Of a stretch of 64,000 nt of DNA, positions 7,738 to 44,769 are shown piece after piece. Position numbers and translations under genes: made by a program. The stretch is taken from positions 147,085-211,084 of the IMG/VR virus record IMGVR_UViG_3300017991_000001. One strand, 5' to 3'. The notes under the pieces are model-generated. The model was given only the letters and a program-made list of their open reading frames with translations. It was not told where the DNA came from and made no database searches. Within the stretch, counting starts at the first letter, position 1, and each line of letters opens with the position of its first letter.

Positions 7738-7803
7738 TTGGTGCGGGCAGCTGCCAAGAGCGCATCCCGCGAGACGTAAGGCCAATTGATAAGGAGACAG
7801 GCC

Positions 7804-8751
7804 GTGGCTAACCCAACTGCGAGCGAGCCGACCTCTCGGATGGTCAACGATGCATTCATCGATCAGTTGGCCAGCGGGAACGACCGGATCGTGAAGGAAG
7901 CCCAGGACGCGATCAACGATTACGTCCGGGTAAGGATGCGTGAAGATGGCTTCTGGCGGAGAATCCTCCCGCCGGTGACCATCACCAACGACGAGCTGGA
8001 TCGGCAGGTGGACACCGACAAGCCCGTCAAGGTGGTCGACAAGGAACCTGAGAGCCCTGCGGCGATCAGCGTGCCTTTTGCCTCGCTGCCCATGAACCGG
8101 TACATCCGCGGGCCCCGGTTCCGCGTGATGTTCGACCGCATCCTGACGCCCAAGTTCACGAAGGACGTGGACGAGCTCAGGACCTACGACATGGACATCC
8201 GGCAGATCCTGTCGGACAACTCCATCAAGGACATGCTGGCCGAAGAAGACGGCAAGGCGATTGCCACCGTCAACTTCCTGCTCCTCGGCGTCAACACGCC
8301 CCTGGCCGAGACGGGCGTCGCGCAGTGGGTTGCCATCTCCGGTGGCGTCACCCGCGACAACCTGGCTGAAGCCATGAAGGTGCTCCCCCGCACCCCGAAC
8401 CACCTGAACGTGGCCACGGTGTTGGTCAACAACGTCACCATCTGGGACGTTGTCAAGTTCGGGCGCGACGAGGTCGGTGGTGACCTGTCCCAGGACCTGT
8501 TCGAGAACGGGTTCGCGGAGCGGGAGCTGCTCGGCCGGCGCTGGATCGTCACGATCAAGCGGGACCTGGTGCCTGACAGCACCATCTTCCTGTTTGCCGC
8601 GCCGAAGTTCCTCGGCAAGTTCTTCGTGCTCGAGGACACGACGATGTACATTGATCGCCGTGCCTTCATGCTCGAGTTCTTCGCGTACGAGAGCATTGGC
8701 TCCTCGATCGCGAACGTGGCCGGCATCGGGCGTGTCGACTTCGAGCCCTAA
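7804..8751 (+). CDS. major capsid protein (probable HK97 fold)
   Basis: GTG at 7804 after AAGGAG; ~315 aa; VRVRMREDGFWRRILPP and C-terminal FFAYESIGSSIANVAGIGRVDF resemble large-phage capsid proteins; follows protease and scaffold; followed by a hairpin. Confidence 0.7.
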   Translation: MANPTASEPTSRMVNDAFIDQLASGNDRIVKEAQDAINDYVRVRMREDGFWRRILPPVTITNDELDRQVDTDKPVKVVDKEPESPAAISVPFASLPMNRYIRGPRFRVMFDRILTPKFTKDVDELRTYDMDIRQILSDNSIKDMLAEEDGKAIATVNFLLLGVNTPLAETGVAQWVAISGGVTRDNLAEAMKVLPRTPNHLNVATVLVNNVTIWDVVKFGRDEVGGDLSQDLFENGFAERELLGRRWIVTIKRDLVPDSTIFLFAAPKFLGKFFVLEDTTMYIDRRAFMLEFFAYESIGSSIANVAGIGRVDFEP

Positions 8752-30654: not shown

Positions 30655-31464
30655 ATGAACGCGAAAGCTTATCTCATCAAGCAGGCCGTCGAACCCATCG
30701 AGCTCCTCATGGGCGGCGGCACGTTGGGAGGTGGCTACCTGGCCGGCGAGTTGGCCGACGCGGGCGCGAACACGATGCTGAGCGACGTGGTGGCCCGTCA
30801 GATCGAGCGGTCCGCCGGCAAGATGTCGCCCAAGGAGCGGCGTGCCATACAAAAGGGCATTGGCGGGGTGAAGAAGGTACCCGTGCATGTCGTGGGCCCG
30901 AAAAAGCTTCACCACGGCAGCGAATACTTCGCGGCCGTGCCCGGCAAAAAGGGTATCGGCGAGGTGGTGATAACGAAACGCACGCCCGACTTCGTGTTGG
31001 CCCACGAGTTGGGGCACGCGAAGGTAAAGCCTACGTTCTTCAGCAAACGGATGTCGCGGTTGGAAGGATTATCCGAACGCCACGGCAAGATGTTGGGCGG
31101 CGGGGCCGGCGCGCTGTGGGCGGCACTCAGTGCCGACCCGGAAGAGAGCGCGCTGCGCACGGGCGTGGAAAGCGGCCTCAAGGGCGCGCTGACCGGCGTG
31201 GCGTCGCACGCGCCCATCCTCGCACACGAGGGGGCCGCATCGTTCCATGGCCTGCGCGGCATGGCTCGCGCGGGTGTGCCGTGGCGCAGCATGGCCCGTT
31301 CGGTACCCGGACTGGCCGCCCTGTTCGGCACGTACCTGGCTTCGGCCGCCCTACCTTCGGCGGGTGTCGCGGCCGGCGCGGGCCTGATCGCGCGCGAGGT
31401 CAAGAAGCGGCAGCTCAAGAGGGAGCTGCGCAAGGCTCGGCGGGAGGGCAAGCTTGGACGCTAA
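30655..31464 (+). CDS. leader-bearing HExxH zinc metallopeptidase-like membrane protein
   Basis: MNAKAYLIKQA; VLAHELGHA; downstream HEGAAS; Gly-rich hydrophobic helices. Confidence 0.7.
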   Translation: MNAKAYLIKQAVEPIELLMGGGTLGGGYLAGELADAGANTMLSDVVARQIERSAGKMSPKERRAIQKGIGGVKKVPVHVVGPKKLHHGSEYFAAVPGKKGIGEVVITKRTPDFVLAHELGHAKVKPTFFSKRMSRLEGLSERHGKMLGGGAGALWAALSADPEESALRTGVESGLKGALTGVASHAPILAHEGAASFHGLRGMARAGVPWRSMARSVPGLAALFGTYLASAALPSAGVAAGAGLIAREVKKRQLKRELRKARREGKLGR

Positions 31465-32086
31465 AGCCTACCTGATCAAGCAGGCCACGACGGTCGGTCG
31501 CCTGGCACGCATCGCCAAGCGGCATGGCATACCACTGGTCGGCGACTGGCGCTACGCGGCCAAGCTGCTGGGTCGGCAGGCCACGCCCAAGGGCAAGGCG
31601 CATTACCGGCGCGCGGCCGGCCTGATCGAGCCGGGCGAACGAAAGATCCTGCGCCGCCTACAGGCGAAGACCAAGGACCCCTTGGCAGAGCTCGGCGTGC
31701 AGCGCCTGCCGGGGGAGCGCCGGCTCGGGGTCATGGGAGATCGTACCGGCTTGGAGGTGACTGAGGGTGCCGTGCGTACGGTTCATACACACCCGGAAGC
31801 AGTGGAAAAGGTATTGGGGGTGGACCTTCCGCCTTTCAGGAGGAACCGGCTGGGGCAGGTGTTCCCCTCGAGCGGGCTGGACTACCGTTACAAGAAGTTC
31901 ATGCCCAAGACGATTAGGGAAGCCATAGCGGACCTAAAGAAGGGACCCTACTTCTTCAAGCACGACCTGGGTGATCTGGAAGATAACTTAGGACTGACCC
32001 ACGCCATCCTGGACCCGAGCACGGGCGTGCAGTCGGTGATAAAAGGTGGTCGGGGTAAGCTGAGAAGGCTGTTCTTCAAGGAGTGA
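31454..32086 (+). CDS. leader-bearing basic protein with a JAB/MPN-like motif
   Basis: TTG start with GGAGG; MDAKAYLIKQA; VHTHP...FPSSGLD...HAIL. Confidence 0.6.
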   Translation: MDAKAYLIKQATTVGRLARIAKRHGIPLVGDWRYAAKLLGRQATPKGKAHYRRAAGLIEPGERKILRRLQAKTKDPLAELGVQRLPGERRLGVMGDRTGLEVTEGAVRTVHTHPEAVEKVLGVDLPPFRRNRLGQVFPSSGLDYRYKKFMPKTIREAIADLKKGPYFFKHDLGDLEDNLGLTHAILDPSTGVQSVIKGGRGKLRRLFFKE

Positions 32087-32088
32087 TG

Positions 32089-32853
32089 ATGAACCCGCGC
32101 GCGTACCTCTTGAAGAGGGCCAAGGACCTGGACGCGGATCTGTCCACGGCGGGCCAGCTCATGACCGGAAACGTGCTGGGTGGCATAGGGGGAGGCTTGG
32201 CTGCCGCCGGTTCAACAGGTCTCCTGGCAAAGGTGCTCATGCCGGGGCTGGGCAGCCTGGCCGGGCCCGTTTCTTCATCGGAGCGCAAGCAGCTTCAAAA
32301 GGCCATGGGCGTCAAGAAGGTGCCCGTGAAGACGCTCAACCCTTTCAAGATGCCCGTGGAAGGGGAGCACTTCGACCCACAAGCAGGCAAGCGTGGAAAG
32401 GTGGTGATCTCCAAACGTTCGCCGGATTACATCCTGGCGCACGAGCTGGGCCACGCGCAGGACCCCGCCTGGACCAGCCCGAGGATGATGAGGGTTTACG
32501 ACATCGCAAGGGATGTAGGAATTCCATTGGGCAGTCTGGCCGGTTCCATCTGGGCCGCGCACGGCGCGGACCCGGAGGATAGCGTAGCCCGCACGGCAGT
32601 CGAGAGCGCGTTGAAAGGTGCCGCAGGTGGAACGGTCGGGTTCTCGCCCGTACTCGCCAGAGAGACGGTGGCATCCTTGCGGGGTTTCCAGGGGATGTAC
32701 AACGCGGGCATGCCTTGGCATAGGATACTCCGGTCAGCGCCCGGTTTGGCAGTGGGCATCCTCACATACATAGCCACGGGGGCGCTACCCGCTGCCGGCG
32801 CGGCAGTGGGTACGGGCCTTGCCGCCAGAGAGCTGAAGAAAGAGGAAGACTAG
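32089..32853 (+). CDS. leader-bearing HExxH metallopeptidase-like protein (paralogue of 30655)
   Basis: MNPRAYLLKRA; GVKKVPV, ILAHELGHA, ADPEDS..RTAVES.LKGA and G.PW..I.RS.PGLA shared with the 30655 protein. Confidence 0.75.
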   Translation: MNPRAYLLKRAKDLDADLSTAGQLMTGNVLGGIGGGLAAAGSTGLLAKVLMPGLGSLAGPVSSSERKQLQKAMGVKKVPVKTLNPFKMPVEGEHFDPQAGKRGKVVISKRSPDYILAHELGHAQDPAWTSPRMMRVYDIARDVGIPLGSLAGSIWAAHGADPEDSVARTAVESALKGAAGGTVGFSPVLARETVASLRGFQGMYNAGMPWHRILRSAPGLAVGILTYIATGALPAAGAAVGTGLAARELKKEED

Positions 32854-37355: not shown

Positions 37356-38285
37356 ATGCCTCCAGTAGGCCCGGTTTGGAACGCGGACTGGCTGAACGCG
37401 AACAGCCAGCGGCACTACCCGATCTCGGAGAGTGCCACCCTTAAGGACTTGACGGGCAGCTTCGAGTTGCCCAAGGACTTCCTTGTCGACCTGCTTCTGC
37501 CCGTACATTCCGATGCCGGCATCGATCCGACCCTCTTTCACGTGCACAGCGTCGGCATCTTCGGTACCGGCATCTCGCTGACGCTGGGCTACAACGGCAC
37601 GGCAATCGGCAGCATCTCTACAGATTCATCGACGTTCACCGGCAACCAGAGCTTCATCTTCGAGGGGACGGGCGCCTTCTTCGACACGGTCGGGAAGGTG
37701 ATCCTGGGTTCCCTGGACAACATCCTGAACTTTGCCGGCTCCTATGAGTTCGACGTCGCGGGGGCCCGTCTCGAACCACATGCCATCGTCCCGGACCTTC
37801 GCGGCGTATCTGCTCTGTACCTCAAGAACGGGGACGACACGATTGGTCCCCTGACCGGCGACATCGTCTTCCAGGCCGGCCGCAACTTCCTCATGAACTA
37901 CGTGAACGGCCCGGCGGGAGAGCCGGACCGGCTCCTGATGAACGCCATCTCGGGTGAGGGGCTGACCGAGGACTGTGACTGCGGGGAGGCCGCGTCGCGC
38001 CCCTGCATCGAGACCATCAACGGGATCAGCCCGGACGAGGACGGCGACTACACGCTTCTGGGTGACGAGTGTCTGGAGCTGGAAGCCATCGCCAACGGGC
38101 TCCAGCTAACGGACAAGTGTGCCAATCCCTGCTGCGGATGTCCTGAACTGGAGGTGGTGGAGACCCACATGCAGTCCCTGACGGAAGCCATCTACCGGCT
38201 CGAGCAGCAGGCGTCGAAGCTGGAAACGGCGATCATCACCATGGAGAACGTGATCCTTGCCTCCAAAACGGAACTTCAGGAATGA
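37356..38285 (+). CDS. tail/baseplate paralogue 1 (WLNAN..R.YP family)
   Basis: DWLNANSQRHYP; TINGISPDEDGD; CANPCCGC; C-terminal coiled coil. Confidence 0.7.
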   Translation: MPPVGPVWNADWLNANSQRHYPISESATLKDLTGSFELPKDFLVDLLLPVHSDAGIDPTLFHVHSVGIFGTGISLTLGYNGTAIGSISTDSSTFTGNQSFIFEGTGAFFDTVGKVILGSLDNILNFAGSYEFDVAGARLEPHAIVPDLRGVSALYLKNGDDTIGPLTGDIVFQAGRNFLMNYVNGPAGEPDRLLMNAISGEGLTEDCDCGEAASRPCIETINGISPDEDGDYTLLGDECLELEAIANGLQLTDKCANPCCGCPELEVVETHMQSLTEAIYRLEQQASKLETAIITMENVILASKTELQE

Positions 38286-39706
38286 CGCAGCCCGTCTTCG
38301 AGTTCTACAGTGCCAACGAGTTCCGCGAGTACCCCTTCGACACGCGGCGTGATGACGGTCTGCACGAGCTTTTCGTGGACGCTTACGTGATGCATACGGC
38401 GCACCGGGATAACGCCGGACGCCTGCGCATGGTGAGTTTCAATACGACCGGGGACCTGGAGCTGCGCTTCGAGGACGGCACGTTGCTGGGCACTCTCACA
38501 AGTGCAGACGGGTTTATTTCCAGCTCTTTTGGCCGCTATACCTTGTACGAATGGCGAAAATCAGTTACGTATGGGGCCGGGTTCACGTCAGAGGATCTTA
38601 TCGCCCGCCTAGTGACAGTCACCGAGAAGTTGAGCAGCTTCTCTTTTCCAATCTCACCGTCAGACGCCTACCTCCTCGCCTCCAGGGTGAACCCACGTCC
38701 GTTGAACGTGATCTCCACGGCTTTGGCGTTCCCAGGTTTGGCTTGTTGTCTGGGCGGCCCCAATCGCAATGCTTTGCAGATGGAATCAGGCTATAACCTT
38801 GAGCTTTCCACGCAAGCACCAGAAAGCGAAGTCGGCCTGGCCCTGGCCGAGACGCCGGAAGTGAGGGCACCGGAAGAAGTGTCCGTGTCGGCGTTGGCTG
38901 GCGCGGGCGCGGGCACCTTCCCCTTGTGCGAGGACCCCTCCGAGTTCGTGCGCTCGCTCAACGGTGTCCAGCCCAACGACGAGAAGGACTTCCGCCTCGG
39001 ACTGGTGGACTGCACCTGGGAGGAGACGCGGCTGGTGGGCGGCACCTCCTCGCCGGTCAATCCCAACACCGATTACCTGGGCTCGATCATCGATGCCACG
39101 GAGAAGATCATCCTGCAGCTGCACCAGGCCTGTCGGGCCTGCTGCGACTGCCCGGACTACGGCCGCGCCTACGACATCATCTATACGACCTGGTCGCGCG
39201 CGAAGACCGTGAACAACCGTCTCATCGAGGTGCTTGGAGACTACGAGCGCATCCTGAACGAGTACAAGGAGATCAAGGCGGACCGCGAGACCGACCTGCA
39301 GGTGAAACTGCGCCTCATCGCGACGCCCGACTACCAGGTGGCCATCGCCGTGCAGATCGGGAACAACTCCCACACGGACCTGAACCCGATGACGCTGACG
39401 GTCGACGCGAACAACGTTGCGTCGCCGACCATCTATCCCGTGTACACCGAGGGTAGCGGCTTCGTGGAGATGGAAGGTACCCACAACGCACAGAGAGACC
39501 CAGCCGGAACGCCGGGCGGTCCCTTCACGCTCGAGATGCCGGCGCTGGCGCCCGGCAAGTACGCCATCTTTCGGATGGCGGTGCGGTACACCGGCAACCT
39601 GCGCTACCAGAAGTACTCGGAGGTTTCGGCAAGGGTGGTGAACGACGAGTTTGACGAGCTGGCGGAGCGGCGCATCCTGCTTCGTGGGCCCCTGGTGAAA
39701 GAATAA
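38282..39706 (+). CDS. tail/baseplate paralogue 2
   Basis: EFYSANEFREYP; SLNGVQPNDEKD; CRACCDC; coiled coil then Ig-like C-terminus. Confidence 0.7.
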   Translation: MTQPVFEFYSANEFREYPFDTRRDDGLHELFVDAYVMHTAHRDNAGRLRMVSFNTTGDLELRFEDGTLLGTLTSADGFISSSFGRYTLYEWRKSVTYGAGFTSEDLIARLVTVTEKLSSFSFPISPSDAYLLASRVNPRPLNVISTALAFPGLACCLGGPNRNALQMESGYNLELSTQAPESEVGLALAETPEVRAPEEVSVSALAGAGAGTFPLCEDPSEFVRSLNGVQPNDEKDFRLGLVDCTWEETRLVGGTSSPVNPNTDYLGSIIDATEKIILQLHQACRACCDCPDYGRAYDIIYTTWSRAKTVNNRLIEVLGDYERILNEYKEIKADRETDLQVKLRLIATPDYQVAIAVQIGNNSHTDLNPMTLTVDANNVASPTIYPVYTEGSGFVEMEGTHNAQRDPAGTPGGPFTLEMPALAPGKYAIFRMAVRYTGNLRYQKYSEVSARVVNDEFDELAERRILLRGPLVKE

Positions 39707-41265
39707 TGCTTGTCTTTTCGGAATGGCTGAACGCGAATGAGGTCCGCCGCTACCCCCTCCATGACAGTGCGAGCGGGGAGCTGCAGGACAATATCCTCGT
39801 GGACGCCCGGCTTTGGGTGCCCAAGAGCGCGGGGCGCGTGGTCTACGTCTCTTCCGTGGGCATCACCAGCGGGCTGGTCACCCTGACCTTCCTGGCCGCG
39901 GCGGACTCCCCTTTCCTGGACGGCACCGGCACGCCGGTCTCCTTCACGCCGCTGGCGGTCGTGCGCGCCTCGCGGCCCGTGACCAGGTTCGTGAACATGG
40001 CCGTCGAGGCGCTCTACCCCGGCGTGGGTGGGTGGATCGCGCTCGGGGAAGGCGCCGTCGAGATCGAGAGCCTGAACGCCCGCTTTACCGGCCCGGCCGA
40101 GACCCAGCTCAACGAGCGCTGCGTGAACGTCTACGACGACGCGGCCGTGTCCAGCGTGGGCAAGGAAAACGTTGCCGAGGGGCTGACGGGCCTGATCACG
40201 CTCCGCGGCGAAGCCGGTGTGCTGAAGACGTTCAAGGCCACCCGTACGGTCGAAGGGGTGGACCGCGAGGTAGCCGTAGTGGCCATGGACCTGGGCGACA
40301 ACAAGGTGTCCAGGCTGCAGGACTTCTCCGGCGTGTGTGGCGGCCGGCCGCAAGCCAACACCTGCAGGAAGCGCGTGGTCGAGCGGATCAACACGGTCAC
40401 CCCGGACGACGACGGCAACATCGACCTGGTCTTCGAGGGGGACATGACGGTCGGGGACGTGCAGCGGGGGCTCATCGTGGACTTCCCCGTGGGACTGGAC
40501 GACGTGTGCCCCGAGTCGATCTCCAACGAGATCCCGTTCCCCGTACCGGGCGGCCCGCCGAGCCCGACGCCGCCCGAGCCGCCGCCGGAACCGTCCGGGT
40601 CTTCGGGCCAGTCCGACTCATCCGAGGGGCTTCCTTCGGGCTATTGCGAGGACTTCGAGGACGGCGTGGCCGAGGAGCTGGACAACTTCGTGGGCAGCTT
40701 CACAATCGAGGACGTACCCGGGCGCACCAAGCGTTACGTCAGCGCCGCCGATGACACCGGTCAGCAGCTTGCCACCAACTACCTGCGGCAGTTCAACACG
40801 GAAGAGGGTGAGACTTATACGGTCGTAAGCATCATTCGTCCGCGCAGCGTGGATGGCAAGAGTTTCCTGATCGCGGGCTTCAAGAACGACAACCTGTTCA
40901 CGTTCGCTGGCATTACGTTGGAGAACGGGGGCAGCTTCTTCGTCGGCAACAAGAGCGGCGAGACAGGCGGGTCCTTCGGTAGCGGGTACAGACCCTACCT
41001 GGAGTTCGCCCCCGAGTGGGACACGCCGCCGGACACGGATTACCAGGTAACCTTCGCCATCTACTCGAGCGACATCGCTGAGATGAAGGTGGCGTGGAAC
41101 GACGGCATCGCCGACCGGGAGCAGACACAGCTTGTGGTGCTGGCTTCCTTCCAGGAGAAGGGACGGCCCGGTCTGGGTGTGCTGAATTCGGAAACGGAGT
41201 TCGATGACTTCGGGGTCAACTGCGAAGAGTTCCCGTCGTCGTCATCGTCAAGTTCGGGGCCTTAA
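39706..41265 (+). CDS. tail/baseplate paralogue 3 with C-terminal beta domain and poly-Ser
   Basis: EWLNANEVRRYP; RINTVTPDDDGN; Pro/Ser linker; ends [10 protein letters not shown]. Confidence 0.7.
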   Translation: MLVFSEWLNANEVRRYPLHDSASGELQDNILVDARLWVPKSAGRVVYVSSVGITSGLVTLTFLAAADSPFLDGTGTPVSFTPLAVVRASRPVTRFVNMAVEALYPGVGGWIALGEGAVEIESLNARFTGPAETQLNERCVNVYDDAAVSSVGKENVAEGLTGLITLRGEAGVLKTFKATRTVEGVDREVAVVAMDLGDNKVSRLQDFSGVCGGRPQANTCRKRVVERINTVTPDDDGNIDLVFEGDMTVGDVQRGLIVDFPVGLDDVCPESISNEIPFPVPGGPPSPTPPEPPPEPSGSSGQSDSSEGLPSGYCEDFEDGVAEELDNFVGSFTIEDVPGRTKRYVSAADDTGQQLATNYLRQFNTEEGETYTVVSIIRPRSVDGKSFLIAGFKNDNLFTFAGITLENGGSFFVGNKSGETGGSFGSGYRPYLEFAPEWDTPPDTDYQVTFAIYSSDIAEMKVAWNDGIADREQTQLVVLASFQEKGRPGLGVLNSETEFDDFGVNCEEFPSSSSSSSGP

Positions 41266-41266
41266 G

Positions 41267-42043
41267 ATGGCCGAGCGCATCGTCGCCACCGAGTGGCGCA
41301 ACAACAACGAGCGGGTCCGCTACCCCTTCGTGGACACCACCTCACTTACCAGCGAGGACGGTGCGGCCACGATCGACCAGGACCTCTTCGACGACGCGCG
41401 GCTCTACCCCGTGGGTGCCGCAGTGGGCGTGTACCTGCGCAAAATCAACGTGGACGGCAAGAACGTGACCTTTACGGTGGGGGACCCTGTCAATGGGGAC
41501 CTGGCAGACGGTACTTATGACGCGACCTCCGCTCCGGCTGAGGTCCCGCTCTATGACGCCTACAACCGCCCCGCAGGCGTACTGGTATCGGACGCCGCGA
41601 GGCTGGGCGCACTGGCCGACCAGCTCCCGCAAGGCGAGACGGTCTTCGAGGCGGCGGCGACGGAATTTGTCGCGTCCGTCGTGATCCCCATGCCGCACCC
41701 CGGTGTGCGCGGTTTCCTGCTGGATGACGGCAACATCGTCTCCGGGGACGTGTGGCTGGTGGGCGAGGACGGGGTGGTGCTCTCCTACGAGGATGGGGCC
41801 ATCCGCGTCGATGTGATCGGCGACCCCTACGCGCTCATCAAGGACTGCGAGGAGCAGGGCCAGCCGCTGCCCACGTTCAACGGGCTGAAGACCCTCAACG
41901 ACATCGAGCCGGACGACGCCGGCGACTTCAAGCTCCTGGTGGGTGGCAACCTGTCGGAGAAGCCCGTATTGCGGATCGCCACGCAGGGTGGCGGTCGCAT
42001 CGAGTTCAAGCTGGTGGGCACCAGCGGGGTGAAGGAGATCTAG
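41267..42043 (+). CDS. tail/baseplate paralogue 4
   Basis: EWRNNNERVRYP; TLNDIEPDDAGD. Confidence 0.7.
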   Translation: MAERIVATEWRNNNERVRYPFVDTTSLTSEDGAATIDQDLFDDARLYPVGAAVGVYLRKINVDGKNVTFTVGDPVNGDLADGTYDATSAPAEVPLYDAYNRPAGVLVSDAARLGALADQLPQGETVFEAAATEFVASVVIPMPHPGVRGFLLDDGNIVSGDVWLVGEDGVVLSYEDGAIRVDVIGDPYALIKDCEEQGQPLPTFNGLKTLNDIEPDDAGDFKLLVGGNLSEKPVLRIATQGGGRIEFKLVGTSGVKEI

Positions 42044-42044
42044 G

Positions 42045-42941
42045 ATGGCCGAGCTGGAATTTCTCGACCACATGGACAAGATCGCCTTCCCGCTTGTGAA
42101 CGGGGACGACCGGTCCTTCGTCGGCGGAGGCGCGCTGCCGCGGCAGGGCCTGTCCGACGCCGGCTTCCTGCTGGGGGTCGACAGCGGTTTCGTGGCCGCC
42201 ACGCACACGGTCCGCCTGTACAGCTACGCGCGCTCCGGCAGCACCATGTCATTCGACTTCCGCTCCGACGCCATGGTCGAGCACCGCTTCCTGTTCGAGG
42301 TGCCTGCGACCACATCGTTCGGCAAGGCGTTCAGGGTGACGGCCACGCGGATCGTGGGGGGCGCCTCCGCGCCCAGCTACGGCGAAGGCTACATCGTGGT
42401 CGGCAACCTGGAGGAGCTGGAAGCGCTGGGGGAAGGCACGTTCCTGTTGACGGGAACACTGCGGGTGGAGCCGGCGCTGCTGCAACCCCTGGTCAACACG
42501 CTGATGAACACGCTGAGCATCGCCAACGAGCCCAGGCTGTGCCCCACCGTCCCGGGCAGTTCCGCGGTGCCCGAGCCGGACTACGTGTGCCCCTTCATCA
42601 AGAACCTGGACGGGGCGATCAAGTTCTCCGAGGGCAACAACGCCCGGGTCTCCGTGGACGCGGACAACAACGTGCTCCAGCTGGGCGGTGCCGTCGGGGC
42701 GGGGCTTGGAGAGCCCTGCGAGGATGTTATCATCGACGAGGACTGCGGGTTCACGCGCGGGGAGGAGTGCGACCCGTGCGACGATTACATCCGTTCGTTC
42801 AACGGGATGCAGACGGAAGACGGGGTGATCTACTTCACAGAGGGACCAGGGGTGGTGGTCATCAACGAGCCGGACGACCACCGCATCCGCATCGTGATCG
42901 ATTCGGACCTGAGGACGTGCACGTCCTCATCGACGCCGTGA
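42045..42941 (+). CDS. tail/baseplate paralogue 5
   Basis: EFLDHMDKIAFP; GAVGAGLGEPC; SFNGMQTEDG. Confidence 0.65.
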   Translation: MAELEFLDHMDKIAFPLVNGDDRSFVGGGALPRQGLSDAGFLLGVDSGFVAATHTVRLYSYARSGSTMSFDFRSDAMVEHRFLFEVPATTSFGKAFRVTATRIVGGASAPSYGEGYIVVGNLEELEALGEGTFLLTGTLRVEPALLQPLVNTLMNTLSIANEPRLCPTVPGSSAVPEPDYVCPFIKNLDGAIKFSEGNNARVSVDADNNVLQLGGAVGAGLGEPCEDVIIDEDCGFTRGEECDPCDDYIRSFNGMQTEDGVIYFTEGPGVVVINEPDDHRIRIVIDSDLRTCTSSSTP

Positions 42942-42948
42942 GGGTCAG

Positions 42949-44769
42949 ATGGCCAGAGCTTTTCCAGAGCGCTCGGAGTGCCCGGAAGTTCCCGATAACG
43001 ACGCGATCGGGACGCTGAACCTCAATGACCCGTCGGAGCCGGCGGACCGCATCATCCAGACGCGGTTCTTCACGTTCCCTCCACCGGAACCGCCCAACTT
43101 TGACTTCGGCTGCTACGGCCCCACCGCGACCGTAAGCGTGTCCGAGGCCTCGTCGGCGGCCGGCGAGGTCGACATCGAGTACCCGAACGAGGACGAGACG
43201 GGGCGCTGTGAGCCACGCTTCAACTTCGACTTCTCCGTGCCGCCCTGTGTGACGGCCAGCACCGAGGCCTCCATTCAGGTCAGTTCGGAACTGGCGGACC
43301 CGGCGGTGGAGTTCGAGGCCTCCCGCAAGACCGGCGACCCTTGTGCCTGGGACTTCCGCTTCAACCTGAACCTGCCCGGTTTCTGCCCGACGGTGCGCAC
43401 GGACGCCTCCATCTCCATCAACGCCTCGCTTTCCGACCCGACGGTGGAGTTCGTCGGCGAGCGCGACCCGCTGGAACCGTGCCGTTTCAACTTCGACCTG
43501 GACATCCAGCTGCCGGAGTTCGGAGAGGATGACGTCTGTCAGGCCAGGTTGGCCACCACGGGCAACATTTCCCTGTCGGGCCTGCAGACCGTAGACGGCG
43601 TCGCGGCCAGCGAGGACGACGTGATCCTGGTGCGGGCGCAGTCGACGGGCAGCCAGAACGGCGCCTACCGCATGAAGTCCGGCGCCTGGGAGCGGACTTG
43701 CGACATGTCCCGGGCCGGCATCATCGTAACGGTGCGGGAGGGTGCGGAGTACGCGGGCACGGCGTGGTTGTTGAGCACCAACGACCCCATCTCGGTGGGT
43801 TCAACGCCGCTGACCTTCACCCTGATAAGCGGATCGACCTGCTGCTGTTCAGCCAGGGTCGCCACGCTCGAGGACATCACGCTCAGCGGGTTGCAGACGA
43901 TCGACGGCGTCTCGGTGGCCGAGGACGACATCGTGCTGGTGAAGAACCAGGGCTCCGAGTCGGAGAACGGCCCCTACCTGGTCAAGGATGGGGCGGCGTG
44001 GGAGCGCACCTGCGAGGTCTTCTCCGGGCACACCGTGTCTGTCCGGGAGGGCACGTACCAGAAGCAGACGGTTTGGATGCTGACCACCGACGGCGCGATC
44101 GAGTTGGATACGACGGGGCTCACTTACCGCCAGGTGGTCGACCGCCCAATGTGCCGGGTGGCCTCCGGCGGCCACACAATACGCTCAACCACCCGCACGA
44201 TCGACGGCGTCGCCACGTCCGTCGACGACATCGTCCTGCTCATGAACCAGAACAACCCGGCACAGAACGGCCTTTACCTGGTCAAGAGCGGGAGCTGGGT
44301 GCGCACCGGCGACATCACGCCGGGCATGATCATCACCGTGCAGGAAGGGGCTGTGTACGGCGGGCAGTCCATCGTCCTGTCCACGGCGGACCCGATCACG
44401 GTGGGTACCACGAACCTGACCTTCTCGCCATTGCGCATGGTCGTGCGGGCTTACGTTGCGCTGGACAAGGGGCCGTTCGGGCAACCCGCTCAGGGGTTGA
44501 CGGGCACGCCCGACATCGACGATATAACCACGCAGGCCGGCGACGTCGTCCTGGTCTTCAATTCCAGTACGCCGGCGAACAACGGTGTTTGGGTCGTGCC
44601 GGGTACGGGGGCCTGGCAAGAGGCAATGCCCGGCACCACGGGCTTTGCCGGTACAATCGTCTCCGTGCGGGAAGGGAACAGGTTCGGACAGGTTTCCTTC
44701 ATGATTCTGGGCGGGGCAGACCGGGATATTTGGGGCATCACCGGCGTGGTGGGCCCGAACACAATTTGA
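42949..44769 (+). CDS. fibre-like virion protein with tandem repeats
   Basis: Four ~100-aa copies of R.AT..I.LSGLQTIDGV....D.VLV.NQ....NG.Y, a module common in phage fibre proteins; three N-terminal C..F.F...P repeats. Confidence 0.7.
   Translation: MARAFPERSECPEVPDNDAIGTLNLNDPSEPADRIIQTRFFTFPPPEPPNFDFGCYGPTATVSVSEASSAAGEVDIEYPNEDETGRCEPRFNFDFSVPPCVTASTEASIQVSSELADPAVEFEASRKTGDPCAWDFRFNLNLPGFCPTVRTDASISINASLSDPTVEFVGERDPLEPCRFNFDLDIQLPEFGEDDVCQARLATTGNISLSGLQTVDGVAASEDDVILVRAQSTGSQNGAYRMKSGAWERTCDMSRAGIIVTVREGAEYAGTAWLLSTNDPISVGSTPLTFTLISGSTCCCSARVATLEDITLSGLQTIDGVSVAEDDIVLVKNQGSESENGPYLVKDGAAWERTCEVFSGHTVSVREGTYQKQTVWMLTTDGAIELDTTGLTYRQVVDRPMCRVASGGHTIRSTTRTIDGVATSVDDIVLLMNQNNPAQNGLYLVKSGSWVRTGDITPGMIITVQEGAVYGGQSIVLSTADPITVGTTNLTFSPLRMVVRAYVALDKGPFGQPAQGLTGTPDIDDITTQAGDVVLVFNSSTPANNGVWVVPGTGAWQEAMPGTTGFAGTIVSVREGNRFGQVSFMILGGADRDIWGITGVVGPNTI

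Follow-up and report, generated by a model that had tools for sequence, protein, structure and literature searches.

The stretch of DNA analysed here comprises 64,000 nucleotides, bases 147,085-211,084 of the 211,084-bp virus record IMGVR_UViG_3300017991_000001, and is referred to below as the window. At positions 30655-32853 it carries a block of three genes, A, B and C, next to a baseplate J-like gene. Genes A and C encode a pair of related, predicted zinc metallopeptidases and enclose gene B, and all three proteins open with a common leader, M-[DN]-x-x-x-Y-L-[IL]-K-[QR]-A, here called the tag. The record has direct terminal repeats and is rated complete. The phage is uncultivated and derives from marine sediment; metagenomes in which it recurs come from marine sediment and seawater, and the GC content of the window is about 64%. 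Cultured phages are all distant: the J-like protein yielded one Salmonella phage match with 17% coverage, and a tblastn search with peptidase A against 50,697 deposited phage genomes returned zero matches.

Peptidases A and C were compared by BLASTP and aligned from end to end, with 44% identity over 257 aa (E 4e-62). The alignment holds GVKKVPV, LAHELGHA and ADPEeSalRTgVESgLKGA as well as HEGAAS in A and its counterpart RETVAS in C, and every catalytic residue is kept in both copies. The initial annotation had quoted these motifs and described a duplicated, diverging pair that brackets a third leader gene. All of this was confirmed by the alignment, by the coordinates of the reading frames and by the common leader; the second copy is absent from the corresponding slots of related phages (see below).

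Gene B is unrelated to A and C, and its product has no hydrophobic segment. No match was found for it in Pfam, PHROG, PDB or NCBIfam, and the search of the PDB with a B profile was also empty. An AlphaFold2 model of B, calculated from a three-sequence alignment, reached a predicted local distance difference test score (pLDDT) of 37 and was unusable. Within the B family, which includes the homologues P0032 and P0033, the pattern HTHP...PSS...GD is invariant. This pattern recalls metal sites of the JAB/MPN type, with a long insert, and B may be a candidate for such a site.

The junctions of the A/B/C block are overlapping or tight, every gene has its own Shine-Dalgarno site, and GC at third codon positions (GC3) is 0.75-0.83. 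On the evidence of codon-position GC, the individual Shine-Dalgarno sites and the overlapping junctions, these are genuine genes whose translation is coupled to that of the baseplate operon. Neither a sigma-70-type promoter nor a credible terminator was found between the block and this operon. The J-like gene forms the upstream border of the peptidase slot and the gene of a conserved 541-aa protein the downstream border. The initial annotation had the block splitting baseplate J from the next wedge gene. The identity of J was confirmed by PF04865 and phrog_6. The 541-aa protein has no Pfam, PHROG, NCBIfam or PDB match, and its designation as a wedge or baseplate part is presumed, with position as the sole basis. 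The baseplate-to-fibre context holds, because a tail fibre gene with immunoglobulin (Ig)-like repeats lies further downstream. Coordinates of all features are given in Table 1.

Peptidase family and predicted fold

Direct scans of A and C against Pfam, PHROG and NCBIfam gave no match, and PF04298 (Zn_peptidase_2) was absent even at E <= 1. An exhaustive search with C in 1.84 billion representative proteins returned 27 proteins at E <= 1e-3 and three at E <= 1e-10; the family is therefore rare. In an alignment of 29 homologues with a mean column identity of 21%, the sole invariant residues are H117, E118, H121, E192 and Y227 (A numbering). The profile of these 29 sequences was searched against the PDB and matched E. 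coli BepA (M48) over about 100 residues (E 2e-4). The match spans BepA H136-E137-x-x-H140 to NEQEADRIG and aligns E192 of A with E201, the third zinc ligand of BepA. PF04298 was matched by 7 of the 29 homologues at E < 0.01, and one of them (P0003, 28.5 bits) exceeded the gathering cut-off of 27. Because neither A nor C reaches this cut-off, they are distant allies of PF04298 and not members by Pfam's rule. For Peptidase_M48 (PF01435) the best homologue was P0002 at E 0.047, below the cut-off. MPTase-PolyVal (PF18818) reached no better than E 0.063 on P0003; A and C are without a match to it and stand alone.

The AlphaFold2 model of A (pLDDT 88, predicted template modelling score 0.80) contains, in this order, a helix at residues 59-69, strands at 77-80, 91-93 and 103-107, the HExxH helix 112-128, a two-helix insert, the glutamate helix 186-205 and a long C-terminal helix. 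HELGH lies in helix 112-128 and E192 in helix 186-205. The arrangement is that of the zincin core as described by Iyer et al. 2017 (PMC5512222). Structure searches were carried out with this model. The top-ranking clusters of the AlphaFold database (AFDB), annotated as M48/Ste24p and as 'putative neutral zinc metallopeptidase', matched over nearly the full length, with a template modelling (TM) score of about 0.5 and a probability of 1.0. In a VIA structure search BepA ranked top (Z 7.4), followed by ArdC (Z 6.8), abylysin and an M48 structural-genomics entry. A cluster of the ESM Atlas that is 100% PF04298 matched the model at TM 0.53/0.60, and the Atlas also holds several virus-only clusters of 50-76 members each (feature scores 0.94-0.95). 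The subfamily therefore appears to be spread among uncultivated tailed viruses.

Other searches gave little. With A as query, Foldseek returned no PDB entry at E <= 0.001; among peptidases the M48 entry 3c37 came closest, at E 1.2. BFVD contained a single relative, an uncharacterised protein of an uncultured phage, and no relative was found when GTDB genomes were searched with A. Searches for IMG/VR relatives with the queries A, A2, A4 and A5 gave none, or alignments too divergent for searching, and a profile search with A2 in a set of 5.8 billion proteins added nothing among the matches listed.

Taken together, alignment and model predict A and C to be gluzincin endopeptidases of a rare, virus-only subfamily allied to PF04298 and M48. 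The earlier reading of HExxH plus a distal E..AS as Zn_peptidase_2-like is upheld by the invariance of E192 in the 29 homologues, its alignment with BepA E201, the PF04298 matches and the predicted fold. Domains of the A/C type also occur outside tail modules (L006, L007, L010). P0028 joins the domain to an SNF2 helicase, and its contig also encodes a giant RNA polymerase with an intein; P0030 joins it to a LigD-PE/ligase protein, and P0008 adjoins a LigD_N gene.

The leader tag and the peptidase slot

The whole 211,084-bp genome was scanned in six frames for the tag. Exactly seven open reading frames (ORFs) begin with the pattern M-[DN]-x-x-x-[YF]-L-[IL]-K-[QRE]-A, all of them on the + strand and at genome positions 139-182 kb. 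These are A, B and C, the leader genes D, E and F and a gene of 70 aa (Table 1). Gene E immediately precedes the gene for the major head protein. Except for the A/C peptidase pair, the bodies of the seven proteins are mutually unrelated. A regulatory motif in the DNA was rejected as an explanation for the leader, because the copies differ at synonymous codon positions; selection therefore acts on the peptide and not on the DNA. The tagged proteins are also distinct in composition. Their isoelectric points (pI) are 9.7-11.4 compared to a median of 4.8 for 35 neighbouring + strand ORFs, only 6 of which lie above pI 9 (Mann-Whitney p 1.4e-4), and GC3 is lower in the tagged genes (median 0.77 vs 0.87, p 0.01).

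The tag was also found in relatives. It stands on nine distant peptidase homologues, in which M1, L7 and K9 are invariant, and judged from these sequences it is ancient within the peptidase family. Both B homologues carry it as well. Three slots in the relatives, here named after the flanking genes, are occupied by tagged genes that differ in content: J/541, 541/201 and 309/474. The 541/201 slot is occupied by D in the window phage and by two tagged genes in L003. The 309/474 slot holds a 276-aa tagged gene in L004 and, on its own contig, the B homologue P0032 (between a 309-aa and a 467-aa gene). The 276-aa gene (L004:6419-7249, 309/465 slot) contains QHELSE, a possible degenerate HExxH-like site, and has no homologue in the window.

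Two occurrences of the motif lie in the middle of Gly-rich proteins, at L008:3295-4053 (ANRYLIKQALGA) and L009:3808-4347 (SAAFLLKKAVEQ). The L008 motif may be a nested start, because it is preceded by GGAG and GTG, that is by its own Shine-Dalgarno site and start codon. The L009 motif has no start codon and is either truly internal or the result of two fused genes. A strict back-translated leader pattern was searched in IMG/VR and JGI metagenomes. Its only related match was this genome or a 65-kb contig nearly identical to it; the other matches, all unrelated, were permeases and an acidic protein family. Permeases of the FtsX/MacB type of about 808 aa from low-GC bacteria (L021, L025, L035, L036, L038, L039, L042) start with MNHF.YLIKQAW before the first membrane helix, and this close resemblance to the tag reflects either chance or an N-cap motif common to juxtamembrane segments. 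A 130-aa acidic family (L016, L023, L027; contig FWPV01000572.1, 113,954 bp) starts with MNPALYLIKQAF; its fetched flanks showed no similarity to the baseplate-region proteins of the window phage.

Cleavage behind the tag was considered too. An A-x-E site of the phiKZ/SPN3US type was rejected, as A-[VL]-[ED] follows the tag in the peptidases only and not in the other five tagged proteins. Across the seven proteins no consistent cleavage motif was found behind the tag, and no prohead protease was recognised.

We then compared the peptidase slot between related contigs, for which BLASTP supports orthology of the flanking genes. In five of them (L003, L004, L008, L009 and the P0012 contig) the J-like gene and the homologue of the 541-aa gene flank a single tagged peptidase, 274-317 aa in size. 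In a sixth, the P0032 contig, J (546 aa) is directly followed by a 531-aa gene and the peptidase is absent from the slot. The second peptidase copy and gene B are specific to the window phage among the relatives compared. The site is thus a conserved accessory slot that is doubled in the window phage. It does vary, as the initial annotation had asked, and the block lies in a baseplate module as that annotation stated; a one-off insertion does not agree with the same slot being occupied in five relatives.

The peptidase diverges faster than its flanks. Peptidase A is the orthologue of the single-copy peptidase of L003 and shares 54% identity with it, compared to 77% for both the J-like and the 541-aa protein. 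For the 541-aa protein identity is 53% in L004, 51% in L008 and 47% in L009. In L008 and L009 the peptidase retains 31-33% over about 140 aa, compared to 45-51% for the neighbours. The maximum-likelihood tree groups A with P0002, the L003 copy (support 98/99), and places C as the sister of this pair (49/93). The second copy therefore probably predates the split from this nearest known relative and was lost there. Faster evolution of C is an alternative; forcing A and C into one clade costs 14.3 log-likelihood units, yet it is not rejected by the approximately unbiased (AU) test (p 0.108).

Table 1. Position of the A/B/C block, the other tagged genes and further features (window coordinates unless marked otherwise)
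Feature	Position	Strand	Remarks
Peptidase A, 269 aa	30655-31464	+	ATG start; leader MNAKAYLIKQA (aa 1-11); HELGH aa 117-121; E192 in HEGAAS; Y227; pI 10.5
Gene B, 210 aa	31454-32086	+	TTG start; 11-nt overlap with A; leader (M)DAKAYLIKQA; pI 10.4
Peptidase C, 254 aa	32089-32853	+	Alternative GTG 32083; leader MNPRAYLLKRA; HELGH aa 118-122; RETVAS glutamate; pI 9.7
Leader gene D, 122 aa	34486-34854	+	MNHRAFLLKEA, then glycine-zipper region; pI 10.5; variable 541/201 slot
Leader gene E, 126 aa	7357-7737	+	MDKKCAAYLIKEA, poly-Gly run, one hydrophobic helix; pI 11.4
Leader gene F, 233 aa	17607-18308	+	MDYRGYLIKQA; net charge +35; pI 11.3; no hydrophobic segment
Tagged 70-aa gene	Genome position 139,176	+	Between RNA polymerase genes; very basic; no hydrophobic segment
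Baseplate J-like protein, 549 aa	28998-30647	+	PF04865 E 6.9e-12; phrog_6 baseplate wedge subunit E 6.8e-20
Conserved protein, 541 aa	32853-34478	+	Downstream border of the slot; start codon on the stop of C
Major head protein	7786-8751		phrog_2522
Sigma-like protein, 232 aa	26986-27684	+	Within the baseplate operon; weak sigma-70 region 3/4 and winged helix-turn-helix matches (HTH_24 E 2.4e-5)
Conserved protein, 626 aa	35466-37346	+	Unbroken run of ~13 serines between two domains, about aa 310-325
Paralogous run	37356-38285, 38282-39706, 39706-41265, 41204-42043, 42045-42941		Common N-terminal (E)WLNAN(S/E)(Q/G)R.YP motif
Tail fibre with Ig-like repeats	42949-44769		phrog_11518 E 3e-65
Glycosyltransferase fusion, 619 aa	47195-49054	+	phrog_3408 E 2e-85; methyltransferase-like C-terminal part
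2358-aa ORF	Genome 131,428-138,504 (L011:3429-10505)		SET, 2H-SAK phosphoesterase, intein/LAGLIDADG, RNA polymerase beta (Rpb2_6), N-terminal beta-prime
C-terminal beta-prime, 612 aa	L011:14263-16101		After the 2358-aa ORF

Further observations concern the neighbourhood of the block. No gene of the module is better conserved than that of the sigma-like 232-aa protein (85% identity in L003), and the P0032 contig has a homologue at the same position with a faint Sigma70_r3 match. The paralogous run downstream of the baseplate genes, whose members cross-match in BLASTP, looks like a duplicated family of baseplate/fibre adaptors. The glycosyltransferase fusion lies just after the tail-fibre genes, and in L003 a TylF-type methyltransferase is inserted upstream of the J gene.

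Possible roles of the tagged peptidases

The reading we favour is that A and C are competent gluzincins belonging to a set of at least seven tagged basic proteins, and that the tag may serve as an address label for loading virion cargo that is delivered to the host. Such a label would be comparable to the capsid targeting sequence (CTS) of phage T4. We assign this reading a probability of roughly 0.4. A CTS-like address function is favoured because a short constant N-terminal peptide stands on unrelated, basic, fast-evolving and position-variable genes. We infer virion loading, delivery, membrane association and the substrates of A and C as follows. Both peptidases would be translated from the late baseplate operon, the tag would recruit accessory, swappable cargo into the assembling virion, and the peptidases would enter the host along with the DNA. 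Their weakly hydrophobic Ala/Gly helices may then settle them on the cytoplasmic face of the inner membrane, where they could cut host or co-delivered proteins. Cellular relatives of the HtpX/YugP type work at this membrane from its cytoplasmic side. Action from this side would fit, because of this orientation and because of the need for solubility in the particle. An attack on defence sensors or a part in superinfection exclusion, both suggested in the initial annotation, would be hypothetical outcomes of such an activity.

Support for delivery is circumstantial and comes from the tag shared by seven basic proteins, the variable slots, the SNF2 and ligase fusions and the fast divergence. Fusions of SNF2 to metallopeptidases have been described as a hallmark of phage 'polyvalent' early effectors, in which zincin peptidases are a hub domain with predicted autoprocessing or attack on host proteins (PMC5512222). 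The window phage itself encodes a 2358-aa multidomain protein, and the tagged 70-aa gene lies between its ORF and the gene for the C-terminal part of beta-prime. The domain fusions and the 2358-aa protein tie phage and domain to the polyvalent-protein theme of injected early effectors. In L010 a similar protein of 2929 aa is encoded beside the SNF2-peptidase fusion.

A wider version of the delivery reading is more tentative. Here the tag would be a virion-addressing signal of an uncultivated jumbo-phage clade, tagged genes in permissive slots between baseplate and fibre genes would be loaded as cargo, and M48/YugP-like peptidases would be the founding cargo, either as inner-membrane effectors or as the tag-releasing enzyme.

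Several points weigh against delivery from the virion. The presence of the tagged proteins in the particle is deduced from their genes, and the A/B/C block sits in the baseplate operon rather than in the head module. Only the peptidases among the tagged proteins have an obvious protease site after the tag, and a T4-type L/I-x-E site does not fit. A strictly N-terminal signal does not predict the internal L009 motif with its missing start codon. HtpX/YugP-like architecture and positive charge suit membrane proteins of the producing cell equally well. The comparison is based on about six contigs, to which the strict tag pattern added no relatives from IMG/VR or JGI.

It is possible, if doubtful, that A and C are instead morphogenetic or tag-processing proteases, which would work in the producing cell or the particle and cut the leader or linkers, or trim baseplate and tail proteins. 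Such a role is in line with the leader being carried by the peptidase itself, both in nine distant homologues, where three of its positions are invariant, and in five of five slot orthologues. It is also in line with the translational coupling of the block to the baseplate genes. The motif in L008 and L009 stands between two Gly-rich modules and resembles a polyprotein junction, although that of L008 may be a separate start with its own GTG and Shine-Dalgarno site. Autoprocessing has been predicted for the zincins of phage polyvalent proteins (PMC5512222). However, the P0032 relative has a tagged B homologue, yet the peptidase is absent from its J/531 slot and from 10 kb on either side. A maturation enzyme with a housekeeping role would also not usually diverge fast or exist in two diverged copies with intact catalytic residues. 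When a leader peptide was docked on the A core, no signal was obtained: the complex predicted from A (residues 21-269), the F leader (residues 1-25) and zinc scored 0.01, which the tool rates as no answer rather than as counter-evidence, and which counts neither for nor against.

We regard it as unlikely that A and C are late inner-membrane proteases of the infected cell, similar to HtpX or YugP, which together with the glycine-zipper proteins would act in superinfection exclusion, envelope remodelling or lysis timing, with the leader as a juxtamembrane helix. The fold matches M48/HtpX/YugP-type proteins of 230-320 aa over the whole length, D and E resemble small membrane proteins, and the unrelated FtsX/MacB permeases carry their near-identical YLIKQAW just before the first membrane helix. 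The family has three weakly hydrophobic helical regions (N-terminal, between HExxH and the glutamate, and C-terminal), and these are presumably placed where membrane helices of HtpX/YugP-type proteins are expected. Basic residues flank the hydrophobic helices. In A a weakly hydrophobic Ala/Gly helix at aa 216-246 is followed by a basic tail, and C has such helices at aa 29-54 and 213-246. Hydropathy of the three regions is mostly 1.0-1.7 across the family, at or under the usual threshold. The Kyte-Doolittle 19-residue maxima are 1.58 for A (aa 228-246) and 1.59 for C (aa 222-240, plus aa 29-47 at 1.41). These values are borderline for membrane spans, and A is without a credible N-terminal span. 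Of the earlier description as Gly-rich hydrophobic membrane proteins, the Gly-rich hydrophobic helices were thus retained and the membrane character proved marginal. Moreover, hydrophobic segments are entirely absent from B, F and the 70-aa protein, three of the seven tagged proteins, and fusions to SNF2 helicase and ligase-type proteins are ill-suited to integral membrane enzymes. YugP itself has been described as a putative spore-membrane metalloprotease (PMC13393411).

That A and C are stoichiometric baseplate subunits with a retained peptidase-like fold is highly improbable despite the J-to-541 position fixed in five relatives and the translational coupling to the neighbours, because HExxH, E and Y are invariant across 29 very divergent homologues, the slot is empty in one relative and doubled in the window phage, and the pI is about 10 amid acidic structural proteins; the divergence is also much faster than that of the neighbours, and the same domain occurs outside tail modules.

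On a conservative reading, A and C represent a new viral gluzincin subfamily whose catalytic residues are strictly conserved and whose place in the genome is both conserved and unusual. They would be the first zinc proteases of the HtpX/YugP type tied to a phage baseplate operon, and no characterised counterpart was found in cultured phages. The YugP family has, to our knowledge, no established substrate. Of greatest interest is the common tag, as it suggests a possible cargo system of the CTS type in a clade of uncultivated jumbo phages. Should it prove to be an address label, the tag would provide a simple handle, defined by sequence, for finding injected or virion-associated accessory proteins across this clade, would help to predict new anti-host effectors, and might allow foreign proteins to be loaded into particles, as the T4 CTS does. 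It would then be a second, independently evolved counterpart of T4 capsid targeting, linked to a metalloprotease.

Comparison with known systems

Among cellular proteins, PF04298 (Zn_peptidase_2, the YugP type of B. subtilis) shares with A and C the HExxH motif plus distal glutamate, a size of about 230-290 aa and the same order of helices. In contrast, the A/C family is viral only, carries an N-terminal tag that is no feature of YugP, and has marginal hydrophobic helices. MEROPS family M48 (BepA, HtpX, Ste24) is linked to A and C by the profile and structure matches to BepA and by the M48/Ste24p clusters of AFDB. Unlike BepA, A and C have no tetratricopeptide repeat (TPR) domain; TM scores reach only about 0.5, and the context is a phage baseplate operon.

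The zincins of polyvalent proteins, including ArdC (Iyer et al. 2017, PMC5512222), have the zincin core in common with A and C, and SNF2 and LigD-type fusions are found in other viruses. A and C differ in being small and stand-alone and in having a tag of their own, and their family is nearer to PF04298 and M48 than to the polyvalent clades.

For the tag, the closest parallel is the T4 CTS. In T4, an N-terminal peptide of 10-19 aa on the divergent basic proteins IPI, IPII, IPIII and Alt leads to head loading for injection (PMC9026906). Similarly, the tag of 11 aa stands on seven basic, poorly conserved and otherwise unrelated proteins, two of which are predicted enzymes (one in T4). It differs from the CTS in having neither sequence similarity to it nor an L/I-x-E site, and its genes are mostly located in tail and baseplate slots. 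Cargo of extracellular contractile injection systems (eCIS) such as PVC and Afp carries N-terminal packing signals of about 50 residues, which are disordered and not conserved in sequence. The tag may be likened to these signals as an N-terminal address on diverse cargo encoded beside the baseplate and tail genes of a contractile machine.

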